Translations under genes and position numbers: made by a program
Source of the DNA: Macrostomum hystrix
Lineage: Eukaryota; Animalia; Platyhelminthes
Direction of reading: 5' to 3'
Length of the DNA stretch: 64,000 nucleotides
Assembly (NCBI GenBank): GCA_950097015.1
Contig: CATNEN010000028.1
Coordinates: 248,001 to 312,000 of the forward strand
Shown here: positions 4,771 through 36,342 of the stretch, piece after piece
How the letters are laid out: each line of letters starts with the position of its first letter
Position numbering within the stretch: the stretch's first letter is position 1
Notes under the pieces: model-generated
What the model was told of the DNA's origin: nothing
Seen by the model: only the letters and a program-made list of their open reading frames with translations
Databases searched by the model: none

Positions 4771-4806
4771 TCAATAAAAAAGTAATGAAGAACTCACAAA
4801 ATGAAT

Positions 4807-7800
4807 TTATACTGACCTATAAGCCGGTTCTTCTGGGTTGCTCATCGACAAGGAAGCGCCATATGTTGGGATCGACGGGTACATCAGCGGGGGATGAGCT
4901 TGTACTCGAACACCAGAATAAAACGAAGTAGGCATAGAAGACGGTGGCAGAAACGAAGCCGGTTGCATCGGTGGCGTGGGCCTGCGTCGAAGCGGTAGCT
5001 TCTGATCGACGCCTCCCGGACCTCGGACAGTGACCAAAAGCTGGCTGACGTCGCAGTTGAAGTCACCGACGCTGATGCTGGAGACGCCGCGGCAGAGAGC
5101 AGCCTCGAGTTGGTCGTTGAGGCCAGGCTCGTGCAGGTTGTCCACGGGGATCCAGGCGCCGCCGCTGAGGAAGAACCAGCGCCAGTTCGTGGCCAGAGGC
5201 TGGCGGAGCACCACGCGGCTGTCAGTGCGAAGGCAGCGTAGGCTGCCAGAGGCGCCAGAGGTGGTTCGAATCTCCATGGGGCCGGGGCCGAAGAACATTG
5301 TCAGCTGGCCGGGAAACTCGGCAACGAACTCCGAGTCGCTGCCGCTCGCAGTGGTGACAAATTCGGACCGGTCAGGCTGGCAGAAGGCCTCCTCAAGCTG
5401 GATATTCAGCACTGGATCCGCGTCCTTCCATTTGTTGGACGGCCATCGGGCGGCCCGCCACTGCCACAGGTAGGGCAGCTTGTGGCGGCTGTGCCGTCTG
5501 GGGCAGCTCTGCTCGTAGCATTCGTGCCGAAGGAATTCCTCGCATAGGGTCTCCGAGGGAGCGGAGGCGGCTGCAGGTGGCGGCTTTGATAGGGCAGCGG
5601 CGGCTGCAGGTGGCCGCTTTGATGGGGCAGCGGCGGCTGCAGGTGGCGGCTTTGATGGGGCGGCAGCGGCTGCGGTTGGCAGCGGAAACAAGACCGCAGG
5701 GGCGACAATTGGCACTCGCGGTTTCGACGGGCCATCTGCCGCAGCAGTCCTTCGCTTTTGATGACCGGTCAGGCTGGCAATGTCGTCAGCGAGCATTGGC
5801 CCGGTAGGAGCCGACTGGTTCTGCTTCTGAGTTACCTTTTTCTGCTGTTTACGCGGCTTTGACTGCACCTGCATAGCTTGCGTCTCACTCTGAGCAGATC
5901 TGGACGGCGTATCAGGTCTAGAAGCAGAAATTTGCATTAGGCTCGTGACGCTCGCATTTGATAGCTTCTGTTTTGGTTCTTTATTCTTCTGTTGTTGCTT
6001 TTCAGCCTTCTTATCCTGGCTCAGCTTAGCTGCACTGGTGCCGGATGCTTGGGGAGGAGGCGACTTGGGTGCAGGGTTCGTATTCAAATTGGACAGCGGA
6101 GCAGGCAGCGAGGGCGGAGCTTTAGAACTGCCTTGCAGACTCGGGTGCCGATCCTTGACTGGGGCGGTGCAACACAGCGGAGCGGGCACTAAAAAAGCGC
6201 GGAGCACATGGCCAGGGTTCAGAGAGTCCATGTCGAATGGAAACAGTTTGTTCTTGTTGGATTCGTCAATGATCAGCGTGTGCTGCCTGTGGCAACTACA
6301 GCGGCCACAGTTCCTGTATGTGACATTGTTGCACAGGTGAATGTCTGGACATTCTGAGCGCTGGCAGCCAGAGTCTGAGTTGTAGTCTGAGCACACCTTG
6401 GGGTGACAGGCCCGCAGCAGGTCCAGAACCTCGCCCTGCCTCAGACCGTCTGCTATGCCCAGAGCGCTGCGAATGCGGTGGTTGCGGCCGGTGAGGTCGT
6501 GGCACAGCCGGCAGGAAGACTGGAGAAAGCGATTGAGAAGCGTTTGAGTCGACAGAAATGAGTTTCAAATGACATTACAACGGTGCTCGATATGGTACAC
6601 TTTTTATCGGGGTACACTTCCATTCATTCACGGGATGCTGCAGAATCTATCATTCACGGGATGCTGCAGGACACATTCATTCACGGGATGCTGCAGAATC
6701 TATCATTCACGGGATGCTGCAGGACACATTCATTCACGGGATGCTGCAGAATTTTTTCATTCACGGGATGCTGCAGAATCTATCATTCACGGGATGCTGC
6801 AGAATCTATCATTCACGGGATGCTGCAGGACACATTCATTCACAGGATGCTGCAGGACACATTCATTCACGGGATGCAGCAGGACACATTCATTCACAGG
6901 ATGCTGCAGGACACATTCATTCACAGGATGCAGCAGGACACATTCATTTACCCAACGCCATCAGCCACAGCCCTCACTCGCCTTATCGTGCACTTTTCCA
7001 TCAGGATCGGCCAGGAACCAGAGGCACAGGTGCAGCTGGCAGCAGTCGGCCTTCAGGCACGAGTTGGGGGCTCCGTTGTGCATCGGGCAGATGCGGAATC
7101 GGCGGAACACATTCACGCTGACGATGCGTCCGCTGTCCTCAGCCTTGTAGATGTCAATCATGCTCTGCACTGGCTTCAGCTGCTCGTCGATGCTGTCGCG
7201 CCAGTTTTCCAGCGGAAAGTCGGCCGGCAGCTGCAGGTCCGTCAGCAGCTCCGACGGAGTCGCCTGGCCGCAGCGGCGAATCAGCGCGGCGTAGACGGTG
7301 CGCAGCTTCAGGCCGCGGTCCGAGACGTCAGGCAGCGGCGGTGGCAGGCAGGCTTTTTTGAGTCCGCTGGCTCCGGCTGAAACTGTCGCTGCTTTGGCGG
7401 CTTTGGGACTGGGCTTAGCGGCCTCGTCAAGCTTTGGCGCCTTTGGTAAGGCAGCCGGCACCAGATAGGAGCGGAATACAAAGCTCAGCTTCTCCGCTTC
7501 CAGTCCATAGCGGGCCAGTTTTGGCACACTGTCCTGCTCAAGCCGATGCTGTCTGGGACATCGGCAAGCGGTGGTCTTCTTGTTGGCTTCCGTTGAGCTG
7601 CGCAGAGCATTATTGCACACGTGTATGTCGGGACAGTCAGGTCTGCTGCAGCCATTGTCGGCATTGTAGCTGACGCACACATTTGGATGACACTGGCGCA
7701 GCAGCTTCATGATCTCGGCCTGCTTGTAACCGATTGCAATGTCCAGAGAGTGCCGGATGCGATGATTGCGGCCAGAGAGATCATGGCACAGCTGGCAATT

Positions 7801-10708
7801 TGCCTGTGATGCCCGGGGTGTGTCAGGACAAAGCACAGGTTTGCTTAATAAGATCAGCTAGTCCCTGAACCTTTCATGTTCATCATGGCTGCAGCCAGTC
7901 CCTGATCCTTTCAGATTCTTCATGTGACCACAGCTATTTTCTGATCCTTTATGGCCACAGCTAGTCCCTGATCCTTTTAATTAAAATCGAAGGATTTCTT
8001 TCGAAATGTTCTAAAATTTTGCGCTATCCTTACTTTCTTGTGAACTTTTCCATCAGGATCGGCCAGGAACCAGAGGCACAGGTGCAGCTGGCAGCAGTCG
8101 GCCTTCTGGCACGAGTTTGGGGCTCCGTTGTGCATCGGGCAGATGCGGAATCGGCGGAACGCATTCACGCTGACGATGCGTCCGCTGTCCTCAGCCTTGT
8201 AGATGTCAATCATGCTCTGCACTGGCTTCAGCTGCTCGTCGATGCTGTCGTGCCAGTTTTCCAGCGGAAAGTCGGCCGGCAGCTGCAGGTCCGTCAGCAG
8301 CTCCGACGGAGTCGCCTGGCCGCAGCGGCGAATCAGCGCGGCATAGACAGTGCGCAGCTTCAGGCCGCGGTCCGAGACGTCAGGCAGCGGCGGCGGCAGG
8401 CGGTCTGGCTCCGGTGCGGTGGCAGCTAGAAGCTTGTCAGAGTCGCTCGGATCTACTGGTGCCAGCGGAACAGGCAACGGAGCCGGAATTGTGAGGCACT
8501 TCAAAATTGTCGCCAGGTTCACCCTGCATAGCGGAGTCAAGTGTGCGCGTTCAGAATGTTTTAAGAAGCTCTGAAGTCTCCGATGTTCTCAACATTTAAG
8601 TTACAATAGCACTATATCGTCTGACTAATATGTCAGAGGTTAGAATCTTAACCCAATGAAAATCTACTCTTTAGCAGCAGGAATTTTGTATATACTACTT
8701 GGTATGAGTAGTACATTTGCAAAAATCTTCCGAAATAACAGGCATATCACATAGCTTGAAGGTACCTGGTTAGGCCATACGTTTCCAGTTTGTCTGAGAC
8801 TTCAACAGCGTCAATTTTATGCTGAAACTGGCACTGGCAGGCACTAGCCGTGGCGGTGACACTGTTGCACACGTGCAGGCTCGGGCATACCACGGGTGAC
8901 AGTTCGCAGCCAAGCCCGGTGTTGTAGGCCAGGCAGACAGATGGATGGGCAGACTTCAGCAGCCGGACAAGTTTCTCCTCCGAAAAGGTTTGAATGCCAA
9001 GTTGGCAAAGAATCTGAAAGATTGCAACGGAATGAAAACTCGATCTGGCTTTCAGAAGTATTGAAATGGGCTTAGGACCCACAGAGGGGGTCGGTGGCAG
9101 AGCGGTTAACGCGTTTGCCTCTCGCACCACGGTCCCTAAGTTCGATTCCACAGCGAGGCCACTTTTATTTGGGGCTCAGCCGCGAAGAGAAGGCTTGGGG
9201 GCTTGTCGTGCAATTTACGCCCTTGAGGGCCAACCTCCAAGGCACACTGAAGTGTACACTGCCTGCCTCCTCGCTGGCTGCGGATCTAGTATCACTAAAT
9301 GATGTGCTATTGCCCGCAGCCCTCCTGTAATTGTTATTATAATTAATATTATTAGGACCCCACAGAACTCGGTATTAAAAACTTCACATATTAGGATGGA
9401 ATCACTAGTTTCAAGATAAAGATTATAGAAATCGAAGTAGAAACGCATTTGGACTTTAATCCGGTCGCTTGTCAGATTTCCATCCGATTTTTTTACCGAT
9501 TTCCGTACGAAATTCAGAAGCCCGGTTTTTGTCCGATTTCGACGTCGGGTGAAGCTGCGGACCAAACTCGGGCGAATCGTCCGCTTCTTTTCGACTTTCA
9601 TTCGATTTCATTCAAACTTCATTCAATTTCTCGTTCGCTTACTCGTCCGCTTCCGACCCGGGCCAAAAACGGACGGGAAATCGAATGTGAAAATTATTTT
9701 TTCGATCGGTCGTCTGGTTTCTAATCCGCCGTCTGTTTGTCCCCTCCGATTTCAAAAGAAAAGTAGTGCAGGTCGATAATTTGTGAATTGTATAAATGCC
9801 TTCGCTCTTGTTTGCCTTTGCTAGTGCCTCCAGTTTTGGCTGAAGCCACGGTTTTAAAAGCTATTTTGTACTCATTTTTAGATATTTTAATAGTTGAACC
9901 AAATCTAGCTGCGCAAGTTGCAGAATTTTGCCTTCCGATCAGTACTTTAACAGCTTGAAATCCTTAAGACTTCAGCATTTAAAGCCGTACAGTGTGTAGA
10001 CTGGTCCCGTATTTAATATGAGTAAGTAGTATTTATTAATAGGTAGTTATTATCAGAATATTACAGTAATACTCTGTGGTTATTATTAGTAGAAGTGACA
10101 CCAATAATACTTTTGGTAAGCTAGCCGAATTCAGCTTTGTGTGTTATTCAATCTTCAACCTTTAATCTACCCTCCAATTACAGGAAGGGGATTTTACAAA
10201 TCATACCATTTAGGGAATTTCCAGAGCTGTTGGGAAACTTTTAGAGGCCAGTTCCCGGGTGACTGACAAAGCACACAAAAAGCACTCTTGTGTCGCTGAC
10301 CTCCTTGTTGTGGGCGTCACTCAGGCCATGGGCCAGGCCGCAATGTCCCTTGTGAACCGACCCATTCGGGTCAGCCAGCCACCACAGGCAGACGTGCAGG
10401 CGTGGGCACTCGACATTCCGGCAGCTCTTCTTGACGCCATTGTAGAACTGGCAGATTCGAACTCGTGGATAGGCATTGAGACGGCCGCGGGACAGAATGA
10501 GCTGCTCAGCTGGCTGATCAGACAGCCACTGGTCCAGTGGGAAGCTGCTTTGCAGAGCAAAGTGGCTCAGAAAGTCGGCCACGGAGGCGCTGCCTTCAGA
10601 GGACAACAGAAATTTCAGCACATTGTCCAGGGTAAGCAGGGGCGCCTGTCGGATGTGCCGGAACACATTTTCAAAGTCCAGCGCGTCCTTGTATGGCTCT
10701 GGCTTCTC
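4807..10708 (-). CDS. ZAP/PARP12-family (ZC3HAV1-like) gene A: 3 tandem winged-helix-like + 4-zinc-finger modules, Pro/Ala linker, CCCH-WWE-WWE, no PARP domain; 5' end not found; >=1226 aa
   Basis: Exons 10708-10301, 9013-8766, 8523-8034, 7803-6982, 6519-4807 join in frame (phases 0,2,0,0). ZAP-type motifs: R.R.C..(Y/H)NG..C....C..LH.C, HP.VC..YN...GC....C..(L/I)H.C, and [28 protein letters not shown]...LEEAFCQP...W.WFF...W...RRRP. Confidence 0.88.
6620..6950. repeat. Intronic minisatellite of mixed 26/27-bp units (tcattcacgggatgctgcag-gacac/-aatc)
   Basis: Visible inside intron 6981-6520 of gene A; same family expanded at 24990-25855 in inverted orientation. Confidence 0.93.
9090..9290 (+). 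mobile_element. tRNA-derived SINE family 1; other copies ~21378-21640 (+), ~40400-40712 (-), partial ~53415-53560 (+)
   Basis: A-box-like GGTGGCAGAGCGG and B-box-like GTTCGATTCC head; body motifs gcttgggggcttgtcgtgca, gtgtacac and gcctcctcgctggctg recur, in whole or part, in the other copies. Confidence 0.75.
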
Positions 10709-11649
10709 CTGAAAAAAAACAGAAAACTATTAGCTTTTTTGTTTTTACAGGATATACTCATGTATACTCATAACACTCATACATTCATATGAAATTCAGT
10801 AAGACTTACATTGTTTTATTTTATGTCATACATGCATGGGCAATGGCCTATTTAATTATTTGCAATCAATCATTCTCAAATTTCTAATACATATAACTCT
10901 TTAATTATAGTCATTAGTTTGAAATTTAAATTTAGTACTATACTATATAAAACTATTTACACTTTAGTCATTCATTGATGTTTCCTTACTAAATAAACAT
11001 GACCTACTTTAAAAGTTATTTACAAGTAAAGATACTAGATAGCAATGTGAGACTAATGGTCAATTTAAGACATAATCCAATTTTTATTTATTTAATTTGA
11101 CTGAAAATCTGCCTTTCATATCATCTGTACCTAGTTTCAGGTACAAAAATATTGTTTTTATCTAACACAAAAATAAAACATGTATATCACAAGCAGTTTA
11201 TAAACAATGCAAGATTTATTTAGAAATGTGTCTAAAAAACTAAACAAGGTTGCACTCACTATAAGATATAGGATTACAAATAAATTGTGTACCAAACTGT
11301 GCTTTAAATTGAGTTTTAGATTAAATGTTGCTTAATTTTAAACATGCATACATGTCTTTATACCTAATAGAATATCAACCAATCCATGTAGCTTTTAATT
11401 CATACGCTACTTATTTTTATTTGTATATGGACAAAAATCAAGTTTTAGTTGTAGTAGAAGACTGGCTCAGGCAAGAAGTCAGTTTTGCCCACATTATTCT
11501 ATGTATATTAAGATAATTTTAAGTGTTTAAAAGTAGTAGTAGTTATATTCAGGAATGTTGAATTATTTTTAATTTCAATTGTATTAAATTAATTTTAATT
11601 AATAATTTAGTCAATTTCAGAATAACTTCCATTTGACAACTCAATCTCA

Positions 11650-12600
11650 AGTTGCCAACATGGCAGGACGTCCACCAGCTCTAACAACCATTGTACCACC
11701 TGGCGAACTTCGACAGCCTGTGGAATTGTGCAACTTGGACCCTACAATGTGTGAACTGGGTGCGATGAAGGCGAATCCAATGGAGACCATCAAGTGGCTG
11801 GCCAAGTATCGGCTTCTGGCAAATGAATGCCATTGTGACAGTTGTCCTGGTCATCCATCAATGCATCTTCAAATGTTGTGGGGGAGACCACTTTGTTGAT
11901 TACTGTGCATGGGCCTGTCCCCAATGCCAACTGCAGGCTTCAGTCTGCAAGGGTTCCTTCTTTGAGAGAAGCCATCTGACACCGACCCAGCTACTTGACC
12001 TGATCTACTGGTGGGCCACAGGTGCCAAGCAGGCCAAGGTGCAGCACCAATGCCACATTGCCGAGCATACCATTGTTCAAAATTTCATCAGGGACATCTG
12101 CAGTCAGTTCCTGCAGAACCACCCTGTGCAGCTTAGTGGCAATGGTGTTGACATCAAGGTGGATGAGAGCTACTTCTTCCACTGGAAGTATCATCAGGGA
12201 GCCTTTCGCCCTGGGCAGTGGGTGCTCGGGATGATCGAGCGTGGTTCCAACCGCTGCATGATGGTGGCTGTTCTGGACAGGTTGGCAACAACTCTTCTGC
12301 CAATCATTGCCCATCATGTGTTTCCTGGCAGTTGGATCATCACGGACCAGTGGCAAGCCTATAACCAACTGGCCAACCATGTGACTGTCAATCACCAGCT
12401 CAACTTCGTGGACCCCAACAATCCAATGGTCCATACCAACACCATTGAAGGCACATGGGCCCATGTCAAGGCCAGACTGTGGTCCATGCATTGAACATCA
12501 AAGTGCTATTCGAAACACACCTAGAAGAGTTTCTCTGGCACCTCCAGTGGAAGATCTTCAGTAATCTTCTATTCTGGGTGGCTCACTACTACCCGGTGTA
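11650..12600 (+). mobile_element. Merlin / IS1595 (ISXO2-like) DDE transposase pseudogene
   Basis: Cys-rich N-terminus (CHCDSC, WACPQC), KGSFFE, VDESYF, QWVLGMIER, IITDQWQAY, VNH..NFVDP, HTNTIEG.W; broken by a frameshift near 11880 and a stop at 12494. TIRs not identified. Confidence 0.88.
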
Positions 12601-13325
12601 ATTGGTGCAGCTTTGCTAGTCTCTGACTCTGACTCTGAGGTTTCTATCATGTGTCTGACTGTCTCTTGTTGTTTCCTGTTGCATTGCATTGCATTCTGTT
12701 GTCGTTTCCTATGATGCCATCTAAAACAATTTAAAATTAAAAATAATTAAACCTGCTGACTCTGCAAGATTGCCGAAAAGGCAAGCAGTCAATTCTGAAA
12801 TTGTATTTGTAAAGAATCAATTTAAATTAGGCCTAATAATATAATAGACATGGAGACACCTGGTTGATAGTGCTGTGATTGGGTTAAAAGCTAAATTGGT
12901 ATTTGGAGGCACATTATTGGTAGATACAAGGTTTTCCATTCTGGTTTTAATAATAAAACATAATATTTTTTCCATAATAGGTTGTACACAAATCACTCTA
13001 TAGTTACTACAATCTGTGTTCTAAATGTTATATCTACATAAAATCCGATTTCATTGTTAATGGACATTTAATGGGCTCATTCTGAGCCACGAATATATTG
13101 TCTATGGTTGGAAAATGCAAAGTCTTGAACCAGTGTGCCATATAATGGTCCCGAAAATGGGGCCCATTAAACTGTATAATGGGCGCCAAATAATGGGCCG
13201 CAAATCATTTATTGTTGCGAAACATTTCAAACATGTTTAAACAAGTAGAATAAGCGACAACTAAGTAGTTAATAGTCAGTGGCAGTAGGCCCTAATGGTC
13301 AATACCCATTGTGAGGTAAACATTG

Positions 13326-13867
13326 TTAGGGCCAAGTCAAATTTGATCTCAATCCTGCCACCCTTGATGACAAGAGACTTGACCCTATGGCCAGCAGTGG
13401 ACTTAATTCCGCGTCCGTCCAGATAGACATCTGCTGCTTCAAGGTGTAGACATAGTAGTGCTGAATCATTGCCACTAAGTCCTTGGGACTACCCCGCAGG
13501 TATTTCTCTCCATTCTCCTTACAAATCTCAAAGACGAAGAATTGGAGAAGCTCATTCACCTCAGACTTTGACAGCACCTCAAGTGGCTTTATCACCATGA
13601 GTCCAGGCACGTCACCTTGCGCTTGCAACTGGACGCAACTTTCCTTCCACGTTCGAAACACCTTGACAGCCCACTTCTCCTTCGCACGCGTAGCGTCAGG
13701 CAAACTCTCCGCCATCCTAGGCCTACGCTACACGTCGTCTGCACTTAACACCTCACCAACACGAGTAGTATCAAGCAACGGCAGAAACTTCACATCAGTG
13801 GCGGGTGAGGCTTCAAAAGAGTCCAAGAATGCAGAAAAGTCTAATTCTTCTTCAGTGTCGGCCATTG
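13326..13867 (-). mobile_element. Crypton-A-like (DUF3504/KCTD1-ZMYM-QRICH1-related) tyrosine-recombinase N-terminal fragment, truncated
   Basis: ATRAKEKWAVKVFRTW...SEVNELLQFFVFEICKENGEKY...LVAMIQHY matches the pattern of the core-binding region; in-frame stop upstream and no catalytic part. Confidence 0.7.
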
Positions 13868-13922
13868 TGGATGCAAATAAACTCAAAGCTAGGCCTAGCA
13901 AGACTGATCTCTCTCTCTGACT

Positions 13923-15513
13923 GACGTCTATACTTTCAGTACCAGAACCAGTACCAGAACCAGTACCAGAAAAAATTTATGTTATAACCAATAAAAAATC
14001 GACAAGCAACTAATAAAAAGAATTCTAACAGATGAAATACTTATATATCGGTCCGAAAATATCATTATTGCGAATAAAATTAATAAATATCGACGGACTT
14101 GCGCACAACACACAAAAAATCGTTTACTTTTACTTTCACAAAACGTTTTCTAATATATTTTTTTCATAGAATAAAACAAATTTGCTCATCCAACTGAGTA
14201 AACGAATACAAAAAGCGGTTTACTAAATATCGCAACTACTAAAATCACAACTCAAAACTCACCTCACCGAATGTGTTTGTATAATTTCTTCTTTTTATAA
14301 TCATCGTAAACTTCATAAAAAAAACTAAAAATATAACCTCACTTTTGCGCTTCGCAGGATTATTACTAGTACATCATATACAGCTGAGAGCAAAGATAAG
14401 GAAGGAAACATTATCTGTGAACACGGCTGTAAAATTTCAGAGCCCTGACTAGTCGCGTCTCGGAGTTATAGACCCTCGAGTCCCCCCCACTCTGATATCT
14501 CCCATTTTAAAAACTTTTCGTCACCTCACTGAATCTGGTGGTCAGACGAGGCTGAAAACTCAGATCTGGAAGGAAACATTATCTGTGAACACGGCTGTAA
14601 AATATCAGAGCCCTGACTAGTCGCGTCTCGGAGTTGTAGACCCTCGAGTCCCCCCACTCTGATATCTCCCATTTTAAAAGTACTTTTCGTCACCTCACTG
14701 AATCTGGTGGTCAGACGAGGCTGAAAACTCAGATCTGGAAGGAAACATTATCTGTGAACACGGCTGTAAAATATCAGAGCCCTGACTAGTCGCGTCTCGG
14801 AGTTGTAGACCCTCGAGTCCCCCCCACTCTGATATCTCCCATTTTAAAAGTACTTTTCGTCACGTCACTGAATCTGGTGGTCAGATGGGGCTGAAAACTT
14901 AGATCTGGAAGGAAACATTATCTGTGAACACGGCTGTGAAATTTCAGAGCCCTGCAGACTAGTCGCGTCTCGGAGTTGTAGACGCTCGAGTCCCCCCCCA
15001 CTCTGATATCTCCCATTTTAAAAGTACTTTTCGTCACCTCACTGAATCTTTGCTCTCAGCTGTATATGATGTACGAGTAATAATCCTGCGAAGCGCAAAA
15101 GTGAGGTTATATTTTTAGTTTTTTTATGAAGTTTACGATATTATAAAAATAAGAAATTATACAAACACATTCGGTGAGTTGAGTTTTGAGTTGTGATTTT
15201 AGTAGTTGCGATATTTAGTAAACCGCTTTTTGTATTCGTTTACTCAGTTGGATGAGCAAATTTGTTTTATTCTATGAAAAAAATATATTAGAAAACGTTT
15301 TGTGAAAGTAAACGATTTTTTTGTGTGTTGTGCGCAAGTCCGTCGATATTTATTAATTTTATTCGCAACAATGATATTTTCGGACCGATATATAAGTATT
15401 TCATCTGTTAGAATTCTTTTTATTAGTTGCTTGTCGATTTTTTGTTGGCTATAACATAATTTTTTTCTGGTACTGGTTCTGGTACTGGTTCTGGTACTGG
15501 AAGTATAGACGTC
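13923..15513. mobile_element. Foldback / large MITE-like element: ~470-bp TIRs (13923-14397, 15046-15513) around ~3.8 copies of a 168-170-bp unit
   Basis: Ends GACGTCTATACTTTCAGTACCAGAACCAG... and ...CTGGTTCTGGTACTGGAAGTATAGACGTC; arms are near-perfect reverse complements; internal units start at 14400, 14568, 14737, 14907. Confidence 0.9.
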
Positions 15514-16439
15514 CTAAATATAACCACTTCATGATCAATTGGAAGAATACAAGCGAAGCAAGTCAATGAGTTCACAAGCTAATTATATGATATTAATATT
15601 CAAATTAAAATACGAGAAAATTCAAATATCAAATCTGATATCTGTACATCTACTGTACATCTGATATCAAAACTACACAACACAATTTCAAGACCAGAAT
15701 GTAAAGACTAATTGTTCATTCATTCTACTTAATCATTCAGCCTTATTATTTTTTACATTATTTCGACATTTAGTCTGTTTAGCTTTTGTTTTAGTAAAGA
15801 GGTGAAACTGAACTAAAACTGCAGTTTAGGTTCATTTTCACGAACTCACCCTTATAGACACCCAATAAAAAACAGCACCATTCTTTCACATTTCGTTTTT
15901 TCTCTCGCATATATTCCAATAATAATTTCAGAACATAGAATTTTAGAATTCCAATAATAATTAATTAATAAGCACTTTCCATTGGCAATGCTGATTTGTT
16001 GCAAATCGTCAGGTGACGTGTAAAAAACGGACTTTATTCATAATCATAGTGTTCCAGATAAATAGGCAATACTGTCACTACTATTCAGTAGTTCAGATGG
16101 GAATGTTTGTAATAGAAAGCTATAATTAAATGCTAAAAAAACAAAAATGCTTGATCTAGGTATTTACAGCACTGCCACAAAGCATTCTTTCATATGCCCT
16201 TGAGGTTTGGGATTCTAGTAGGGCCTAGGCCTATCCTAGTCATATTTTAACTGCCATTTTGTCAACTTGGGTTGTAGCAACTGATTCCTTTAGTTGGTCG
16301 ACTATGTTATCATGAATGTAATGATTAAAAAGCAGTCTCTTTTTTTAAATTAGGACAATAAGTGTTGCAGGTAATAATAATTAATAATAATTGATTACAC
16401 CTGCCCCAATTGGGTCAGATGTGCAGCCGACAGCACAGT

Positions 16440-16678
16440 CGCAGCTAATGCTCAGCGCATCTGAAGGCTGCGTACAGCTGTTCAGTCCACGGACTGGGGG
16501 ACGCCACACCCACCTTCAATTATCCCAGCTGATGCTGGTACCCATTTAACAGCTGGGTGAACTGAAGCAATGCAGAGTTAAGTGTCTTGCTAAAGGATGC
16601 AAATTGTTCCAGTGGAGTCGGGAATCAAATCCCCGACCTTCAAGTCGTGAGTCCGACACCCTAACCACTAGGCTACAA
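16440..16678 (-). mobile_element. tRNA-derived SINE family 2 with Meta/V-like central domain; possible degenerate relative at ~650-790
   Basis: Minus strand reads TAGCCTAGTGGTTAGG...GGATTTGATTCCC then CTTTAGCAAGACACTTAACTC...TCAGTTCACCCAGCTGTTAAATGGGTACC. Confidence 0.7.
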
Positions 16679-17196
16679 CCTCTGCATGTTGCATGTACAA
16701 TAGTCATAGACTCTTAAACAGCTCAACCTTTTTTTCTTTTCTTGGCCATGGCCGAGTTACAAGCACAAAGATTGTCATCTCATATGGATCTAGTATAGTT
16801 TATTCATGTAGTATTAAATAAATAATATGTAAATATGTAAATACATGTAGCACAAAGACACAAAGTCACAAAGAAAGGAGGCAGAGGGGAGAGGGAGTGA
16901 GAAAATTTTATTTTGCTTTTAAAATGAAATTTAACTTAATTCAGCTTATTTGGCTTGCCCACCAAAATGGGGAATGTGGCCTAGGCGACTGCAGCTGACC
17001 AGAAAGCTACACATAGAGAGCTTGCCAGCTCAATAAATTGCCCAGTTATGTGTGGCTCGCAGGTATGGGCCCTAGTGTTCAATGGCTGTGGTGCGACATT
17101 TGAACCTGGAATTGTAGCTAGTGGAACAGTAATTCTGCTTGCCATTTTTTTTCATAGTTAAATCCCATCACAAAATCCCCCTGTCTATATGATGCA

Positions 17197-17615
17197 TCAC
17201 TGCGTCTTTCCCATTATTTGTTCCACTGGCAATATGGAAGTAAGTCTTCTCCTGAAGACCCACAAGAAACTGCTGAGGTACTGGTACTGGTACTGCTCGA
17301 GTTCGCTCTCTTGAAGCCTTTGTGGCTCCTGGAAGTGACCCACATCAGCAGCGTACAGTTCAGCCAGGATCTGATCTATATCTGGCTCCACAGGTTGCTG
17401 CACTGCTGGTAGCTAGGCTGCAGCTGGCTCGGCACCTCTGCGGCAGGCATGGCAACGCCAGTCGAATTCATCCAAGTGCATGAGTCATTGATACTCTACC
17501 AAAGACACATTCGTTCGCATGTCCTGTGTTGCCACTGGTGGTATTGATTGCACTGAAGGGCTTGCTGGCGAGGTCGCACAAGGGCATTGCATTCAATGCA
17601 ATTATCTGCCTGCAT
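17197..17615 (-). pseudogene. Decayed PHD-finger ORF, probably the N-terminus of a DNA-transposon protein (MULE-type by inference)
   Basis: MQADNCIECNALVRPRQQALQCNQYHQWQHRTC...EYQ*LMHLDEFDWRCHACR with stops and frameshifts. Confidence 0.6.
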
Positions 17616-18240
17616 TTTCAGATTTGATTGTTTGTGCTCATGTGGTTTCATTCCGGTTGCCCTTATATACTAAATAACTAAATAGGTTGCACGTCGGAGT
17701 GATGTAAGAGTTGAAAGACAGGTGCCAACACGATGTGGGGAGGGCTGGTTCTGTTCTAACTTTGAAAACTTTTGTTTTATAGATGCCGTAGTGTCCACGA
17801 GTCACTTCGTCATCCATCCTTTGAGATATTTGAGATTGTCATCTGGATGACGAAGTTGTTAGATGACGAAGTGTCCGGGGACAATATTTTATAGTTGCAT
17901 GTATATGGACCAAAATATGTATTTAAAATAGTCATAGACTATTTGAACCCTAATTTAAATATTAAGATATAGGGTTAGCTTATAATTTGCTATAGATTAG
18001 CTTTGATTAAAACCCTTAGTCCATGTATAGATTAGTCTTGTTTGTCTAGAGTTATTGCTATTGAATTAGGTATATTTTTGCTCTATATAGTATAGCTTCT
18101 TGGTGTCATAGCTAGTTATGTATAGATAAAAATGTATCTAGAACAATTTTGTTTTGACATTCTGTAGTTAAAATGACAATTCAAATAATAATTTATCATT
18201 TTACACTGTTTAACACATGCAATTGCATATTTTACTTCAG

Positions 18241-21200
18241 TATAGAAGAAAGAAAGCATTTGTTCGAAATGCTGCCAAAGCACGATTCAGCTACTTATCC
18301 ATGGAGTTTGCAGTTGTGTACAATTTACCGCAACAGTTCGATGTGCAGCAATAAGCTGTGCCGCTGTCTTCACATCTGCCCAAACTGGTTAGCAGGATAT
18401 TGCAAAGCTCAGACAAATTGTCGTATGGCTCATTCCACACTGACTCTGCACAATATCCAGGTGTTGCAGCACTACATGCCAAAACTGTCAAAAGATTGCG
18501 AATTCAGGCGTCACAAGTGCATCCTTTCAGCCTTTGTTCGGCCCTGCACGCATAACTGGGGCGGCAAATGCCGTGTGGGTCCAGCTAAATGCCCCAATCT
18601 CCATTGCTGTCCTGCTACAGCTCGCGGCAGACCGTGTCCCCGAGCCGACCAGTGTAAACTCGGCCATCAGTTGGACAGGGCGGTGTTTAAACGGCGAAAT
18701 ATTAATATTCCGGATGGCTGGGAAGACGTGCAGGTGAATTCTAAATATTTGTGCATGGCTACTTTTGTGTACGACTTCCTTTCAAAACATTAAATTTACT
18801 CATTTTAACAGTAGGACTATCAAGCCATATTGCCGCCTGCCCACCTGAACATACCGCCCCCTATACCGAACCGCCTGAAAATTTTGTTGGCAGCGCCTGA
18901 ATGTTAATAGCGCCAAATATTTAGGCTTCATTAGTGGCAGTTTGACCTTTTTTAGCCCTTGAAGGTCCAGCAGTCCGTCTAGATAAAGGTAGGTGACCAC
19001 CAAAGATGGAGATGTAAGGAGATGCAGGCAAGTTTGGGAACAGGCTGATAAATTTTGAAGGCCTAGTGATGTGTCGTGCAGTGATGTGAAGATAATCCAG
19101 TCGAATGCTTGCAAGTTGGCGAGCTTGCTTATTTGGGCTTGAGTCGTGGTAACACGCGTTGGACTAGCTTACGGGCAAGCACTTATCGAGGGCACTGGGG
19201 AGCTGGGGCCATAGACAACTACTATTATAGAATAGGAAAACAAGACGAACAATTATAAGTACATTTACAAAGCACGTAGCTACACTACACGTCACCTAGC
19301 AAGGCCGCACTGAGGCGCAGTGCTAATTCCTTTATAGAGGTGTATACACTCAGCAACATTTAAAACGCAACACTCTAACTAGAAGAAAAATCAACTCACC
19401 CAGAAGAGTCAAAGCGCATAGTCTATGGTTCAAATCGAGCTTCAGAAACGCGTGTAGCCTCCTCTCGCAAGTAACAGGGCGTTGACTCGACGTGGCATTC
19501 CCAGAACAAGGCGTCGAAAAAAGTCCTGGGGAATTTCCTGCCACGCGTTAGCAACAGCGTTTCGCAGTTCAGCGACTGTCTGCGGCGGATTCTGCCGTTG
19601 AACACTCCGCTTGATAAAGTCCCAGACATGTTCAATTAGGTTCATATCAGGGGATCTTGAAGGCCACCGAAGATGCAGTTTGCAGTTTGCGACGCCACCA
19701 AAGTGGTTGTTAACAAAAGGGAGCAGATGCGTCTGCAGCAAACGAGCGTACTCATCGCCGTTCACGTTTGCGTCTAAGAAAACCAACTGGGTCCTGCCTC
19801 GCATTGAAATCCCTGCCCACACGTGTACGGAGGGTCCCTGCCCATCGCAGCTTTGCACGTGCTGCTGCAGAAGCTCTTGCAAAGGCTCACGCCAGACGCG
19901 AATTCGACCATCACTGCGAAAAAGACGAAACCGACTCTCGTCTGTAAAGATAACGCGCTGCCACTGTCCTTGCCGCCAGTGCGCCCGCTGCATGGCCCAC
20001 AGTTCCCTGTTAGCGACATGTGCAGGACTCAGGCGCGACCTCCTCCGCATTTTTCTTGACCGCAATCCTGCAGCGTGAATCCTGCGGCGAATCGTCTGCG
20101 CGCTGAGAACGTTGCCTCTGCGGCTTCTCTCTGCCCACATCAATCGCAGGAGTGTGGCATGCAGTGTGGGGTTTCCACGCACTATTCTCAGCAGGCGTCG
20201 ATCTGCCCTCGCTGTTGTACTGCGAAGTTGGTGAAGCACCGTACCTTTTCTCGCGTGAGCCACGCTTCCAGTGGCTCTGCTCTTCTGTAGCAGACGTAAA
20301 ACTGTTGAAGGCGACCTCCCGAAGTGGTTCGCAACTGTTCGAAGAGTACAACCTGCTTCCAACATTCCGACTGCTCGCCATCTTTCCGCGTCTGTCATCT
20401 GTTGAACCATTCTCTCAGCTGGATCACTCTATCTGAAAACAGTCCATAGTCATCGCCCTGTTACTTGCGAGAGGAAGCTACACGCGTTTCTGAAGCTCGA
20501 TTTGAACCATAGACTATGCGCTTTGACTCTTCTGGGTGAGTTGATTTTTCTTCTAGTTAGAGTGTTGCGTTTTAAATGTTGCTGAGTGTATATGAAATAC
20601 ACTAGCGCTTGTGGGAAAAATCTGACTTTAGCCAGAACCATTGAATATCTCGACGGTCTAAAGAGCTGGCGACTTGGTTTTTGTTTCAGAAGATGCGCAA
20701 CAAAAATTTGGCCGTGTTCTTGAGTTTCGTGGGCTTGCGCTTGCAGCAAAAAATCCCCTTTTGGTATTTCTACTGTTAATGTAAAAAACCGATATTAATT
20801 TATTTAAAGCTAAACAGGATAGTGAGGAACAATTAAACTGCATGTGGTGAAGAACCGGTCAAGGACCAATCAAACGACGGATTGTTTAGAACCAATCAGA
20901 AAACGGGCAGCAAAGAACCTATATAAACAACACGGCTAATATATGTATTGCCTGGAACCGCATTTCAGATTGCCTGGCGATTTATAGTTATCAGCGATCC
21001 ATACAATGCGGCCATGCTGCGCCAAGCCCACGCCTGCCATTGCCGTCGGTGCCAACCTCCGGATGCCGGCGACGCAGCTGACAGCCGGGCCGAATCTTTG
21101 GCCTCTAACACCGACGAGCGATCCAGTATCGATGACTTAGATATCGATTTGGACGATGTGGCATCTTCCAGTGGCGATTTTGTAGACGATTTCGCCGCCG

Positions 21201-24200
21201 AGAAAACGGGCGCCGACGTTGAAGGAGCTGTCGGAGGCGGTGACTCATCATTTAATGAAGACAATATGATGGTGGCTAACGACCTAAACTATCTTGACAA
21301 TATGGAATCGCCGATGAGTACAATGAGAGAGCCGCGTAACATTGTAAGTCGATTAGAAAATGCGAGGCTTGAGATGTGAGTGGCAGAGCGTTTGTGTCTG
21401 GCACCAAGTCGCCTTGAATATTAAAGGCGCAGCAGTGGAGACAATGCTTGGGGGCTTGTCGTGCAGGTTATTCCGACGAGGGTCAAATCCCCAATGCCCT
21501 GTCGGGGCAGATGTACAGACTTGTCTTAGTGGGTGCCTGAATGCAGTATCTGTGTGCGCGTGTGCTCAGGAGTCAGCGTAATGGTACAGAATTGCCTCCT
21601 CGCTGGCTGTGGGTCAACGGTCAATAAAAATGGCAAGTGCCAATAGACCTGCAATTATATATCCATATTATTCTAATAATAATTGCCATTGTATTGTAAT
21701 ATCAATTATTTATCTCCCCTAGGCTGGTCCATACGAGGAGAAGCCAGAGCCATACAAGGACGCGCTGGACTTTGAAAATGTGTTCCGGCACATCCGACAG
21801 GCGCCCCTGCTTACCCTGGACAATGTGCTGAAATTTCTGTTGTCCTCTGAAGGCAGCGCCTCCGTGGCCGACTTTCTGAGCCACTTTGCTCTGCAAAGCA
21901 GCTTCCCACTGGACCAGTGGCTGTCTGATCAGCCAGCTGAGCAGCTCATTCTGTCCCGCGGCCGTCTCAATGCCTATCCACGAGTTCGAATCTGCCAGTT
22001 CTACAATGGCGTCAAGAAGAGCTGCCGGAATGTCGAGTGCCCACGCCTGCACGTCTGCCTGTGGTGGCTGGCTGACCCGAATGGGTCGGTTCACAAGGGA
22101 CATTGCGGCCTGGCCCATGGCCTGAGTGACGCCCACAACAAGGAGGTCAGCGACACAAGAGTGCTTTTTGTGTGCTTTGTCAGTCACCCGGGAACTGGCC
22201 TCTAAAAGTTTCCTAACAGCTCTAGGAATTCCCTAAATGGTATGATTTGTAAAATCCCCTTCCTGTAGTCTTTAGGATTCGCCATCCCGAATTGTGAAAT
22301 CCCCATTCTGGAGTCTTTAGGATTCGCCATTCCGAGTTTTGAAATCCCATTCTGGAGTCTTTAGGATTCGCCATTCCGAGTTTTGAAATCCCATTCTGGA
22401 GTCTTTAGGATTCGCCATCCCGAGTTGTGAAATCCCCATTCTGGAGTCTTTAGGATTCGCCATCCCGAATTGTGAAATCCCCATTCTGGAGTCTTTAGGA
22501 TTCGCCATTCCGAGTTTTGAAATCCCATTCTGGAGTCTTTAGGATTCGCCATCCCGAGTTGTGAAATCCCCATTCTGGAGTCTTTAGGATTCGCCATCCC
22601 GAGTTGTGAAATCCCCATTCTGGAGTCTTTAGGATTCGCCATCCCGAGTTGTGAAATCCCCATTCTGGAGTCTTTAGGATTCGCCATCCTGAATTGTGAA
22701 ATCCCCATTCTGGAGTCTTTAGGATTCGCCATCCTGAATTGTAAAATCCCCATTCTGGAGTCTTTAGGATTCGCCATCCTGAATTGTAAAATCCCCATTC
22801 TGGAGTCTTTAGGATTCGCCATCCTGAATTGTAAAATCCCCATTCTGGAGTCTTTAGGATTCGCCATCCTGAATTGTAAAATCCCCATTCTGGAGTCTTT
22901 AGGATTCGCCATCCCGAGTTGTAAAATCCCCATTCTGGAGTCTTTAGGATTCGCCATCCCGAGTTGTGAAATCCCCATTCTGGAGTCTTTAGGATTCGCC
23001 ATCCCGAGTTGTGAAATCCCCATTCTGGAGTCTTTAGGATTCGCCATCCTGAATTGTGAAATCCCCATTCTGGAGTCTTTAGGATTCGCCATCCTGAATT
23101 GTAAAATCCCCATTCTGGAGTCTTTAGGATTCGCCATCCTGAATTGTAAAATCCCCATTCTGGAGTCTTTAGGATTCGCCATCCTGAATTGTAAAATCCC
23201 CATTCTGGAGTCTTTAGGATTCGCCATCCTGAATTGTAAAATCCCCATTCTGGAGTCTTTAGGATTCGCCATCCCGAGTTGTAAAATCCCCATTCTGGAG
23301 TCTTTAGGATTCGCCATCCCGAGTTGTAAAATCCCCATTCTGGAGTCTTTAGGATTCGCCATCCTGAATTGTAAAATCCCCATTCTGGAGTCTTTAGGAT
23401 TCGCCATCCCGAGTTGTAAAATCCCCATTCTGGAGTCTTTAGGATTCGCCATCCTGAATTGTGAAATCCCCATTCTGGAGTCTTTAGGATTCGCCATCCT
23501 GAGTTGTAAAATCCCCATTCTGGAGTCTTTAGGATTCGCCATTCCGAATTGTGAAATCCCCATTCTGGAGTCTTTAGGATTCGCCATCCCGAGTTGTGAA
23601 ATCCCCATTCTGGAGTCTTTAGGATTCGCCATCCCGAGTTGTGAAATCCCCATTCTGGAGTCTTTAGGATTCGCCATCCCGAGTTGTGAAATCCCCATTC
23701 TGGAGTCTTTAGGATTCGCCATCCCGAGTTGTTAAATCCCCATTCTGGAGTCTTTAGGATTCGCCATCCCGAGTTGTGAAATCCCCATTCTGGAGTCTTT
23801 AGGATTCGCCATCCCGAGTTGTGAAATCCCCATTCTGGAGTCTTTAGGATTCGCCATCCCGAGTTGTTAAATCCCCATTCTGGAGTCTTTAGGATTCGCC
23901 ATCCCGAGTTGTGAAATCCCCATTCTGGAGTCTTTAGGATTCGCCATCCCGAGTTGTGAAATCCCCATTCTGGAGTCTTTAGGATTCGCCATCCCGAGTT
24001 GTGAAATCCCCATTCTGGAGTCTTTAGGATTCGCCATCCCGAGTTGTGAAATCCCCATTCTGGAGTCTTTAGGATTCGCCATCCTTTGAATTCTTTGGGA
24101 TTCCCAATCTCGATGCTACCGCTCTCTTCAACCAATATACATCTCAAATCTTATTCTGGAAATCCGAACGATGCGACAGGTTTTGTCCCAGCTCGGTTTG

Positions 24201-27200
24201 GCTGGCAGTGATAGCGAAAAGATCTGCGGACTTCTACGCGCCAGTCATCCGACTGTCTGCTCAGACTACAATTCTGATGCCGGCTGCAGGAGGAGCAGCT
24301 GTTCGGATATTCACATCTGCAACAATGTCACGCACAGGGAGAATAAGATTTCCAAGCAGCTATGTCCTTGTCACCGCAGCCACCAGTTGGAGCCGCCAGA
24401 TAAGGATCCCGAGACCTTTGCCAAATTGGCCAGATTCGGTTTGGATAGCGACGAGAAGCTCAGCTTCGTTGTCAGATCATTTCTGATACCGGCACCGCTG
24501 ATGAATAGGCTATCGAGTATGGCCTCTGCTCAAGCCGCACCTGCAGCTGCTGCTCAGGCGCTCCCAACTCGCGCTGAACCAGTGCCGCCGCCGCTGCCTG
24601 ACGTCTCGGACCGCGGCCTGAAGCTGCGCACCGTCTATGCTGCGCTGATTCGCCGCTGCGGCCAGGCGACTCCGTCGGAGCTGCTGACGGAGCTGCAGCT
24701 GCCGGCCGACTTTCCGCTGGAAAACTGGCGCGACAGCATCGACGAGCAGCTGAAGCCAGTGCAGAGCATGATTGACATCTACAAGGCTGCGGACAGCGGA
24801 CGCATCGTCAGCGTGAATGCGTTCCGCCGATTCCGCATCTGCCCGATGCACAACGGAGCCCCAAACTCGTGCCTGAAGGCCGACTGCTGCCAGCTGCACC
24901 TGTGCCTCTGGTTCCTGGCCGATCCTGATGGAAAAGTGCACGATAAGGCGAGTGAGGGCTGTGGCTGATGGCGTTGGGTAAATGAAATGATCCTGCTGCA
25001 TCCCGTGAATGAATGTGTCCTGCAGCATCCCGTGAATGAATGTGTCCTGCAGCATCCCGTGAATGAATGTGTCCTGCAGCATCCCGTGAATGAATGTGTC
25101 CTGCAGCATCCCGTGAATGAATGTGTCCTGCAGCATCCCGTGAATGAATCTGTCCTGCAGCATCCCGTGAATGATAGATTCTGCAGCTTCCCGTGAATGA
25201 TAGATTCTGCAGCTTCCCGTGAATGATAGATTCTGCAGCATCCCGTGAATGAATGTGTCCTGCAGCTACCCGTGAATGAATGTGTCCTGCAGCATCCCGT
25301 GAATGATAGATTCTGCAGCATCCCGTGAATGAATAGATTCTGCAGCATCCCGTGAATGAATGTGTCCTGCAGCATCCCGTGAATGAATGTGTCCTGCAGC
25401 ATCCCGTGAATGATAGATTCATCTCATGGAGTCACAGCTTCCCGTGAATGATAGATTCTGCAGCTTCCCGTGAATGAATATGTCCTGCAGCTACCCGTGA
25501 ATGAATGTGTCCTGCAGCATCCCGTGAATGATAGATTCTGCAGCATCCCGTGAATGAATGTGTCCTGCAGCATCCCGTGAATGAATGTGTCCTGCTGCAT
25601 CCCGTGAATGAATTTGTCCTGCAGCATCCCGTGAATGATAGATTCTGCAGCATCCCGTGAATGATAGATTCTGCAGCATCCCGTGAATGATAGATTCTGC
25701 AGCATCCCGTGAATGAAAAAAATTCTGCAGCATCCCGTGAATGAATGTGTCCTGCAGCATCCCGTGAATGATAGATTCTGCAGCATCCCGTGAATGAATG
25801 TGTCCTGCAGCATCCCGTGAATGATAGATTCTGCAGCATCCCGTGAATGAATGGAAGTGTACCCCGATAAAAAGTGTACCATATCGAGCACCGTTGTAAT
25901 GTCATTTGAAACTCATTTCTGTCGACTGAAACGCTTCTCAATCTCTTTCTTTAGTCTTCCTGCCGGCTGTGCCACGACCTCACCGGCCGCAACCACCGCA
26001 TTCGCAGCGCTCTGGGCATAGCAGACGGCCTGAGGCAGGGCGAGGTTCTGGACCTGCTGCGGGCCTGTCACCCCAAGGTGTGCTCAGACTACAACTCAGA
26101 CTCTGGCTGCCAGCGCTCAGAATGTCCAGACATTCACCTGTGCAACAATGTCACATACAGGAACTGTGGCCGCTGTAGTTGCCACAGGCAGCACACGCTG
26201 ATCATTGACGAATCCAACAAGAACAAACTGTTTCCATTCGACATGGACTCTCTGAACCCTGGCCATGTGCTCCGCGCTTTTTTAGTGCCCGCTCCGCTGT
26301 GTTGCACCGCCCCAGTCAAGGATCGGCACCCGAGTCTGCAAGGCAGTTCTAAAGCTCCGCCCTCGCTGCCTGCTTTTGGCTCCGCCACCGGCGGTCCGCC
26401 GCCGGTACCGCCATTGATGAGAGGGCCGCAGCAGCAGCACCCAATGGGGTAGGACTGGCTTGTCCCAGTGACTTTTCTACAGTTTTGTGCCTTAATCGTA
26501 ATTCATTCGTAAGTCTTTGTTCTGTACATGCAGTCGTCCAATCGGTGAGATCCAGTCTGGTGGTCCGCCGCACCTGCGCGGTCCGCATCCGGTCTATATG
26601 AACCTGCAGAGCAACCGTCAGAAGAAGCTAGCAGCAAGCAGTGTTCCGAACATAGCTAACTTGAGACTGCCGGGCGGTTCTGTTGCTTCGAATTCAGCTA
26701 AAACATTTCAGCAGCGACATCTGAAACAGCGTCAAGCGGCAGTTGCTCCCAGCCAAGTTGCTGCCGCAGCTGCTGCAGTCCCGCCGCCACCCGCAGCCGC
26801 CGCTGCCCCATCAAAGCCGCCACCTGCAGCCGCCGCTGCCCCATCAAAGCCGCCACCTGCAGCCGCCGCTGCGCCATCAAAGCCGCCACCTGCAGCCGCC
26901 GCTGCGCCATCAAAGCCGCCACCTGCAGCCGCCGCTGCGCCATCAAAGCCGCCACCTGCAGCCGCCTCCGCTCCCTCGGAGACCCTATGCGAGGAATTCC
27001 TTCGGCACGAATGCTACGAGCAGAGCTGCCCCAGACGGCACAGCCGCCACAAGCTGCCCTACCTGTGGCAGTGGCGGGCCGCCCGATGGCCGTCCAACAA
27101 ATGGAAGGACGCGGATCCAGTGCTGAATATCCAGCTTGAGGAGGCCTTCTGCCAGCCTGACCGGTCCGAATTTGTCACCACTGCGAGCGGCAGCGACTCG

Positions 27201-27704
27201 GAGTTCGTTGCCGAGTTTCCCGGCCAGCTGACAATGTTCTTCGGCCCCGGCCCCATGGAGATTCGAACCACCTCTGGCGCCTCTGGCAGCCTACGCTGCC
27301 TTCGCACTGACAGCCGCGTGGTGCTCCGCCAGCCTCTGGCCACGAACTGGCGCTGGTTCTTCCTCAGCGGCGGCGCCTGGATCCCCGTGGACAACCTGCA
27401 CGAGCCTGGCCTCAACGACCAACTCGAGGCTGCTCTCTGCCGCGGCGTCTCCAGCATCAGCGTCGGTGACTTCAACTGCGACGTCAGCCAGCTTTTGGTC
27501 ACTGTCCGAGGTCCGGGAGGCGTCAATCAGAAGCTACCGCTTCGACGCAGGCCAACGTTTAGAACCCTGCTTACGTCTGCGCCCATGCAGCCGCCGCTGC
27601 CCAGTAGCCCGCGCCCGCTATTCCAATTTCAACCGCGCCCGAATTTTCAACAGCCACCGCCTCACGGAGGCAGCTACTTGTTCAGCCGGCCTGGGTACGC
27701 TTAG
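18241..27704 (+). CDS. ZAP/PARP12-family (ZC3HAV1-like) gene B: 3 zinc-finger RNA-binding modules, acidic linker, Pro/Ala linker, CCCH-WWE-WWE, no PARP domain; 5' end not found; >=1240 aa
   Basis: Exons 18241-18733, 20969-21343, 21723-22145, 24180-24947, 25955-26448, 26534-27704 join in frame (phases 0,0,0,0,2); same motifs as gene A; several segments are near-identical inverted copies of A. Confidence 0.88.
19347..20588 (-). mobile_element. Tc1/mariner element (1242 bp) with 135-bp TIRs and TA TSD; transposase ORF 20410-19442, internally deleted; inside an intron of gene B
   Basis: TA|CACTCAGC...GCTGAGTG|TA; HTH region, [27 protein letters not shown]; the QDNA segment with the second catalytic Asp is missing. 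Confidence 0.95.
22268..24084. repeat. Intronic minisatellite, 45-bp unit (gtctttaggattcgccatcccgagttgtgaaatccccattctgga), ~40 copies
   Basis: Directly visible; fills intron 22146-24179 of gene B. Confidence 0.95.
24990..25855. repeat. Intronic minisatellite of mixed 26/27-bp units, expanded paralog of 6620-6950
   Basis: Visible; short junction sequence (atctcatggagtcac) near 25420 separates two blocks. Confidence 0.93.
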
Positions 27705-28035: not shown

Positions 28036-28475
28036 CTTTATCGCCTGTATTTTAATTATCCAATCGTTAATCCCATTTCAGATATCCCCCAAATCCTCGC
28101 TGATACCCAGCCAACGTGTTTGGCCGAACCGTTTTAGTGGAGAGTACGGACATTACTCCTGATTTGAGGAATGCGGGTTTAATTTTAATTTATTTTTTAC
28201 TCTAAAACAAATTTTCTTATTGAAGTTTTTTCGAGGTAAATTATTTTTCACGTTTATATTAAATACAGTCGTGTAACTAACTTAAGCGATTGTATGATGC
28301 ATGAGAGAACGAGCTCAATATGACTTTGTCCATGGTAGAGTGGTTCAGGTGTCTGATTTAAATTTTTCTGGTGAGTTTCCATGATTGAAATAACGTCTGC
28401 CACCTTCTGAGAGAAAATTTACATTGTGTCGTTTTATTCCTGTTTTTACTGAGCTAATTTACTCGTAAAACCGAA

Positions 28476-36335: not shown

Positions 36336-36342
36336 CCAGTTC

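Follow-up and report, generated by a model that had tools for sequence, protein, structure and literature searches.

How near-identical N-terminal half-modules come to be joined to C-terminal half-modules of very different sequence within one polypeptide is the question raised by a 64-kb stretch of the genome of the flatworm Macrostomum hystrix (C28:248001-312000; hereafter the window, in whose coordinates all M. hystrix positions are given unless a contig is named). The window carries two ZAP/PARP12-like genes placed head to head, gene A on the minus strand (10708-4807) and gene B on the plus strand (~18269-27704), with a spacer of 7.5 kb between them. Gene A comprises three ZAP-type four-finger modules, and gene B a PARP12-like exon (X) followed by two such modules. 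Each module has an N-half (N1, N2 and N3 in gene A, N1 and N2' in gene B; N2, N3 and N2' are termed type 2) and a C-half (C1, C2 and C3 in gene A, C1' and C3 in gene B). The mosaic is very probably the product of concerted evolution by non-allelic gene conversion within an ancient gene pair, in which the C-halves are old lineages.

The window was compared with itself by BLASTN, the type-2 N-halves were aligned three ways and single exons were scanned by maximal chi-square. N3 (6988-7349) and N2 (8040-8401) were 97.8 % identical, with 8 mismatches in 362 nt and no gaps, and N2 (8040-8398) and N2' (24941-24583) were 98.05 % identical (7 mismatches in 359). A sequence-only reading of this DNA had described a segment of ~350 bp occurring three times, with eight differences between the two gene A copies, and the self-comparison returned exactly that count. 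The three type-2 N-halves (~360 bp) differed pairwise at 6-8 sites and were about equidistant, with 3-4 private differences per copy, giving a star-like pattern. Exon 10708-10301 (N1 of gene A) was 100 % identical to 21738-22145 (N1 of gene B). Both lay in a shared block of 532 bp (10179-10710 and 22267-21736) that contained three differences only, all intronic (10232, 10222 and 10220), and that carried ~120 bp of intron beyond the N1 exons. The N3-side block 6624-7346 matched gene B at 25306-24583; segments 6100-6936 and 4975-5683 of gene A were 98 % identical to gene B, the second of these pairing with 26849-27557 (98.3 % against 5683-4975). Synonymous divergence (dS) between C3 of gene A and C3 of gene B was 0.012, and it was 0-0.05 across the homogenised segments within M. 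hystrix.

The C-halves adjoining these near-identical N-halves shared 37-53 % amino acid identity. C2 and C3, which follow the two gene A copies, were 50 % identical; C1 and C1', which continue from the identical N1 exons, 39 %; and C1' and C2, 49 %. The strong divergence and the different continuations noted by the sequence-only reading are thereby borne out. Between C-half types dS was at or near saturation (1.3-2.3 where computable; three pairs were not computable), and the self-comparison of the window listed no BLASTN match of at least 150 nt between different types. C1 showed 34-42 % amino acid identity to every other C-half and formed a long branch that grouped weakly with C1' (support 71/83). 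No donor for C1 or C2 was found elsewhere in the M. hystrix genome, nor any other close paralogue able to act as donor; the sole other relative of the family was a distant (~30 % amino acid identity) CCCH-module locus at G000:C1:3826704-3827483. C1, C2 and C1' had no similar partner in the genome and have therefore persisted as separate lineages of an age exceeding that of the divergence from Macrostomum lignano. The possibility that C1' of gene B is a recent C1/C2 hybrid formed by unequal crossing-over was ruled out by its identities to C1 and C2, by the saturated dS and by the presence of an M. lignano orthologue.

The edges of the homogenised tracts were sharp and took no account of exon limits on their 5' side. 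Similarity began at ...TGCC(G/A)CCGCCGCTGCCTGACGTC (PPPLPDVS), and the tracts ended near a phase-0 donor, in the case of N2 a few bases before the splice donor. At the PPPLPDVS codons identity rose from 0.51 to 0.98 within single exons (maximal chi-square; Fisher p 2.8e-58), and the same intra-exon breakpoint was present in M. lignano, where identity rose from 0.55 to 0.99 at PSLPPPLP (p 2.7e-53). The 5' edge lay inside exons 7803-6982 and 24180-24947, N3 and N2' being the 3' part of exons that open with the preceding C-half and not whole exons.

The closest database proteins belonged to two M. lignano loci, L009 (P0045 = PAA76514.1) and L010 (P0046 = PAA55276.1), which were compared with the window. 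L009 was of B-type, with X, N1, C1'+N and C3, i.e. the gene B architecture with two modules. L010 was of A-type: it had no exon X, and its similarity to L009 opened at the same GAGAAG codon as the similarity between genes A and B in the window. An open exon at L010:13679-14560 was orthologous to C2+N3 of gene A (66 % amino acid identity across all 274 residues). This exon is omitted from the deposited model PAA55276.1; with it, there are three ZAP-type modules as in gene A. The C-terminal tails were type-specific across the species, that of gene A aligning to L010 only and that of gene B to L009 only. The last exon of gene A aligned end to end with L010, and the downstream flank of L010 matched window positions 223-4706, downstream of gene A (tBLASTX), so that synteny reaches beyond the pair. 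Positions 1-1731 of L009 were the reverse complement of positions 1-1731 of L010 (99.9 %), and the two genes would therefore have the same head-to-head layout, ~18 kb apart, in M. lignano. The type markers retained were the C-terminal tails, exon X, the 5' edge and the C2+N exon. The K/Q-rich linker, as opposed to another linker, was dropped as a marker, since L009 also encodes a K/Q-rich linker in the read-through of its C3 exon; the linker difference between P0045 and P0046 is a matter of splicing or of gene models.

Three C-half positions were common to both species, namely C2 in the second A-type module, C1' in the first B-type module and C3 as the last in both genes. The A/B pair, the extra module of gene A and the distinct C-halves thus arose before the two species split. 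Only A-type position 1 differed: it carries C1 in M. hystrix and, in M. lignano, a C1' showing 99 % identity to the B-type C1' of the same species. Position 1 was most likely overwritten by conversion in the M. lignano lineage, and it is the sole real re-pairing seen.

The N-halves and the C-halves gave different histories. Amino acid identity among type-2 N-halves was 97 % within M. hystrix and 96-97 % within M. lignano, against 78-81 % between the species; for N1 the values were 100, 97 and 72 %, respectively. C-halves of the same type were 72 % (C2), 71-72 % (C3) and 63-64 % (C1') identical between species, against 42-53 % for different types. In a DNA tree the six type-2 N-halves formed species clades (support 100/100), whereas the C-halves grouped by type across the two species. 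Approximately unbiased (AU) tests rejected every pairing of N-halves by positional orthology (p 9e-5 to 4e-128) and rejected a species clade of C-halves (p 5e-55). Separate trees had been named by the sequence-only reading as a check that congruence would decide against it; with trees so strongly incongruent, that objection fails. Between-species dS was 0.52-0.87 for N-halves and 0.76 to >1.6 for C-halves. For C2 the between-species dN/dS ratio was 0.13, and the A-type gene is therefore under purifying selection.

These rates also bear on the proposal that strong purifying selection alone, with no recombination, keeps the N-halves identical. The N-halves are indeed constrained, with a between-species dN/dS of about 0.23, but their dS of 0-0.05 within species stands against 0.52-0.87 between species and the identity runs on through introns. 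Recombination, and not selection alone, is required because synonymous sites and introns were homogenised too; the proposal is already refuted and its probability is negligible. Recent duplication, independent in each species (birth and death) and inserting young N-halves beside old C-halves, would likewise predict low dS within species. It would, however, require precise parallel insertions of the N-part only, at three positions in two lineages, and in both species C2+N forms one exon that breaks internally at the same point and whose C2 is orthologous. Both species also have the 5' edge, the synteny and the two types of tail (A and B) in common; such duplications are very improbable.

The comparison with M. 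lignano also bears on how far the mosaic reflects combinatorial shuffling, in which recurrent exon-level exchange would re-assort N- and C-halves and be selected for diversity of RNA specificity. The mosaic itself is real, A-type position 1 carries different C-halves in the two species and, in the inferred gene models, the half-module boundary lies inside finger 2, where a change of partner could alter a binding pocket. Shuffled units, however, would be bounded by introns of compatible phase, and the 5' tract edge lies within an exon; they would also appear in different orders among paralogues and species, and only A-type position 1 differs. C2, C1' and C3 have kept their order and identity in species separated by a dS of at least 0.5, no pool of additional modules exists in the genome, and the recent events equalise N-halves rather than make combinations. 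Shuffling of this kind is distinctly unlikely. Of the 'exon-level conversion or shuffling' suggested by the sequence-only reading, conversion is upheld by the incongruent trees and the exon level is not; its further suggestion, that new pairings of fingers 1-2 with fingers 3-4 are being created, is not supported, given the conserved C-half positions and the growing uniformity of the N-halves.

The repeats are flanked by large intronic minisatellites, in a minisatellite-rich region where repeats might have been collapsed or joined into chimeras during assembly. Against such an artefact, every copy is set apart by substitutions of its own and by unique flanks, and the two arms are structurally different. 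The M. hystrix assembly is PacBio-based and polished and was made from an inbred line, with a quality value (QV) of 42.8 (PMC10468722), and the independent assembly of M. lignano shows the same architecture. An assembly origin of the mosaic is hardly credible.

Concerted evolution by ectopic gene conversion is known in duplicated genes and inverted repeats, examples being the arms of palindromes and mosaic paralogues in immune gene families; such mosaics are textbook outcomes of the process. The pair resembles these cases in that paralogues within a species are closer than orthologues between species, and in that the tracts have sharp edges that do not respect exon limits and extend into introns; in the few segments compared, the GC content at third codon positions (GC3) also tends to be raised. 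GC3 was 0.82-0.87 in the most homogenised segments (type-2 N-halves) and 0.61-0.65 in single-copy C-halves, the segments being few. For C1' it was 0.63 in M. hystrix, where this C-half is unique, and 0.84 in M. lignano, where it is common to both genes; C3 of M. lignano also had a GC3 of 0.84. The pair differs from the known cases in that the tracts coincide with a half-module, and do so in both genes and both species, with the result that the same N-half is joined to different C-halves in one polypeptide. In the proposed mechanism, conversion would act between genes A and B and between the modules of gene A, in all places that are still sufficiently similar. It would have affected all three N-halves of type 2, both N1 exons together with ~120 bp of intron, the stretch from N3/N2' through the intron and C3, and the CCCH-WWE block, and tracts would end where alignable similarity ends. 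Homogenisation of the N-halves is recent, took place separately in each of the two species and lowers N-half diversity.

Several points weigh against this interpretation or narrow it. We infer that the copying proceeded by conversion, and the data do not separate conversion from repeated unequal crossing-over. C1 may represent the original C-half of the A-type gene or may be a copy of C1' that has evolved fast; the tree joins it weakly to C1' at the support given above. The GC3 pattern, drawn from few segments, fits GC-biased conversion; codon usage might explain part of it. The species compared are two, and the head-to-head layout proposed for M. lignano was pieced together from loci on two contigs of a redundant, polyploid assembly. 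The exact splicing and the expression of gene A are likewise predictions: no Met codon occurs in the first exon that can be recognised, and the gene needs a GC donor.

The assignment of the modules to the ZAP/PARP12 family followed from comparisons beyond single exons. A profile built from the exons of gene B and the M. lignano orthologues matched structures of the ZAP N-terminal domain (3u9g residues 19-198, E 3.8e-5; 6l1w, E 1.3e-4; also 6uei), and P0045 alone matched 6l1w (E 2.3e-4) across fingers 1-4. Neighbours in the ESM Atlas bear PF25261/HTH_53, and Cys/His ligands were visible in every module. The family link, of low similarity (E about 1e-4 to 1e-5), was thus obtained via the ESM Atlas, the M. 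lignano orthologue and the profile; when single exons were scanned with Pfam no match passed the cutoff, those to PF25261 staying below it, and phmmer of one exon against the PDB gave 3noh as its sole match, judged to be due to chance. One module is thus a domain of the type of the ZAP N-terminal RNA-binding domain, consisting of a winged-helix-like part and four CCCH fingers, and the flatworm modules would by inference bind RNA. The Pfam WWE model scored 19.8-20.9 bits (19.8-20.1 for the last exon of gene A) against a cutoff of 21.1, two WWE-like repeats can be seen in the sequence, and the M. lignano orthologue is named 'WWE domain-containing protein' in UniRef. Pfam gave no match to a PARP (ADP-ribosyltransferase) domain, both genes stopping soon after the WWE region (4807 and 27704); the M. 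lignano orthologues end likewise, soon after the WWE region and with no PARP domain.

Vertebrate ZAP (ZC3HAV1/PARP13), an antiviral RNA sensor, and PARP12, together with the known ZAP/PARP12-like genes of invertebrates (PMC8102003), have in common with these genes the winged-helix-like part with its four CCCH fingers; one more CCCH finger and a pair of WWE-like repeats come next. The absence of the PARP domain is reminiscent of the short ZAP isoform and of some invertebrate homologues (PMC8102003). Unlike in ZAP and PARP12, the module is tandemly repeated in one protein, three times in gene A and twice, together with the PARP12-like exon, in gene B. Invertebrate genomes typically hold a single ZAP/PARP12-related copy, flatworms not being mentioned (PMC8102003), whereas M. 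hystrix has a pair. Tandem modules of the PF25261 type are likewise found in multi-module PARP12-like CCCH proteins (P0003, of 1778 aa with nine matched stretches; P0005; Pomacea XP_025082025.1), but these are only distantly related, with 25-38 % identity across the matched stretches.

The gene models were read exon by exon from splice sites, open reading frames (ORFs) and comparison with M. lignano (Table 1).

Table 1. Predicted exons of genes A and B and the minisatellites in their introns (window coordinates)
Feature	Position	Strand	Content	Basis
Gene A, exon N1	10301-10708	minus	N-half of module 1, with the winged-helix-like part and fingers 1 and 2	Splice-site reading
Gene A, exon C1	8766-9013	minus	Very divergent C-half at position 1, fingers 3-4; ends in phase 2	
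Gene A, exon with tail of module 1, linker and N-half N2	8034-8523	minus	Converted tract 8040-8401	
Gene A, exon C2+N3	6982-7803	minus	C2 ~7803-7447; N3 = converted tract 6988-7349	
Gene A, last exon	4807-6519	minus	C3, K/Q-rich linker, one CCCH finger, two WWE-like repeats, A-type tail, stop	ORF
Gene B, first coding exon X	18173-18793	plus	PARP12-like CCCH module; orthologue match 18269-18760	tBLASTN with P0045, 61 %; weak Pfam PF25261 match
Gene B, second coding exon	Open frame 20948-21379	plus	Acidic linker; orthologue match 20966-21106	tBLASTN with P0045
Gene B, exon N1	21723-22145	plus	Begins 5 codons upstream of 21736, where similarity to gene A starts	
Gene B, exon C1'+N2'	24180-24947	plus	C1' orthologous to M. 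lignano C1'; N2' = converted tract 24583-24941	
Gene B, exon C3	25955-26452 (open frame end)	plus	98 % identical to C3 of gene A up to 26374	
Gene B, last coding part	26517-27704	plus	Ala/Pro repeat, CCCH finger, two WWE-like repeats, B-type tail, stop	Open frame
27-bp minisatellite	6621-6948		Intron after N3 of gene A; same repeat family in the matching gene B intron	
45-bp minisatellite, 41 copies	22247-24084		Fills the gene B intron from N1 to C1'	
27-bp minisatellite, ~32 copies	24981-25853		Gene B intron after N2'	

When the inferred exon ends were placed on the alignment to the ZAP structure, the intron between N-half and C-half fell inside finger 2 in modules 2 and 3, and ~16 codons further on in module 1. 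C1 of gene A retains the CCCH ligands, with a finger 3 spacing of C-x6-C, and exon C2+N3 likely uses a GC-type donor (AAG/GCGAGT). Exon X, present in gene B and not in gene A, is unique in the M. hystrix genome.

N1 of gene A has no Met codon and is directly preceded by a strong acceptor (T-rich tract and CAG). The start of the gene would lie at this acceptor, a T-run followed by CAG/GAGAAG at 10701-10717 (minus strand); the same codon in M. lignano is preceded by a genomic ATG (L010:9983-9990). The Macrostomum spliced leader ends in ...TTGCATG (PMC8629364), and its ATG has been noted as a likely start codon (PMC10468722). Trans-splicing between 10709 and 10708 is hypothesized here; it would give gene A the N-terminus M-E-K-P-E-P-Y-K-D, in frame and the same as in M. 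lignano. The 31-mer of the spliced leader occurred 208 times in the M. hystrix genome, partly in regular arrays with a spacing of ~11.6 kb (C15, C17 and C42; e.g. C17:2765-37730), which are probably tandem repeats of the spliced-leader RNA gene.

The M. lignano introns beside the converted tracts are also filled with minisatellites (L009:12172-13932 and 14800-15218; L010:14656-15644). Such intronic minisatellites may favour recombination or may simply mark these introns. The window as a whole is unusually rich in long minisatellites (3263-4773, 28475-29486, 30071-32618, 36341-38986, 49019-50180 and 58828-62474), in arrays of 1-3.6 kb with units of ~23-78 bp, several of which yield long spurious open frames. 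In the spacer between the genes lie frames for an ISXO2/IS1595-like DDE transposase domain and for a QRICH1-like domain (11823-12494, plus strand; 13326-13715, minus strand), and a Tc1/mariner transposase lies inside the first intron of gene B (19442-20410, minus strand). A short dispersed repeat just upstream of exon C1 (9087-9265) is 82 % identical, in inverted orientation, to 40537-40715; it looks tRNA-like by eye, and ARAGORN found no tRNA in it.

It is tempting to suppose that conversion and selection together maintain a design of constant N-half and variable C-half in a multi-module invertebrate ZAP-like sensor, with the front of the finger 2 pocket shared and its long-preserved back varied, finger 2 being the CpG pocket of vertebrate ZAP. 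This idea is speculative and unlikely; if it were true, a single protein could recognise a range of RNA motifs, and its specificity would switch whenever a C-half was now and then converted, as at A-type position 1. Apart from that idea, the pair shows in good resolution how, in nature, concerted evolution can affect only part of a repeated protein module. The process itself is known; what is new is the combination of a flatworm ZAP-like pair, tandem modules and the same half-module tract homogenised independently in two species beside halves kept distinct from before the species split. Flatworm ZAP/PARP12-like genes with tandem modules, predicted to bind RNA, and with no PARP domain represent an architecture that is not discussed in PMC8102003. 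Should RNA preference vary among the modules, the pair would offer a simple setting in which to ask which half of the ZAP fold sets specificity.

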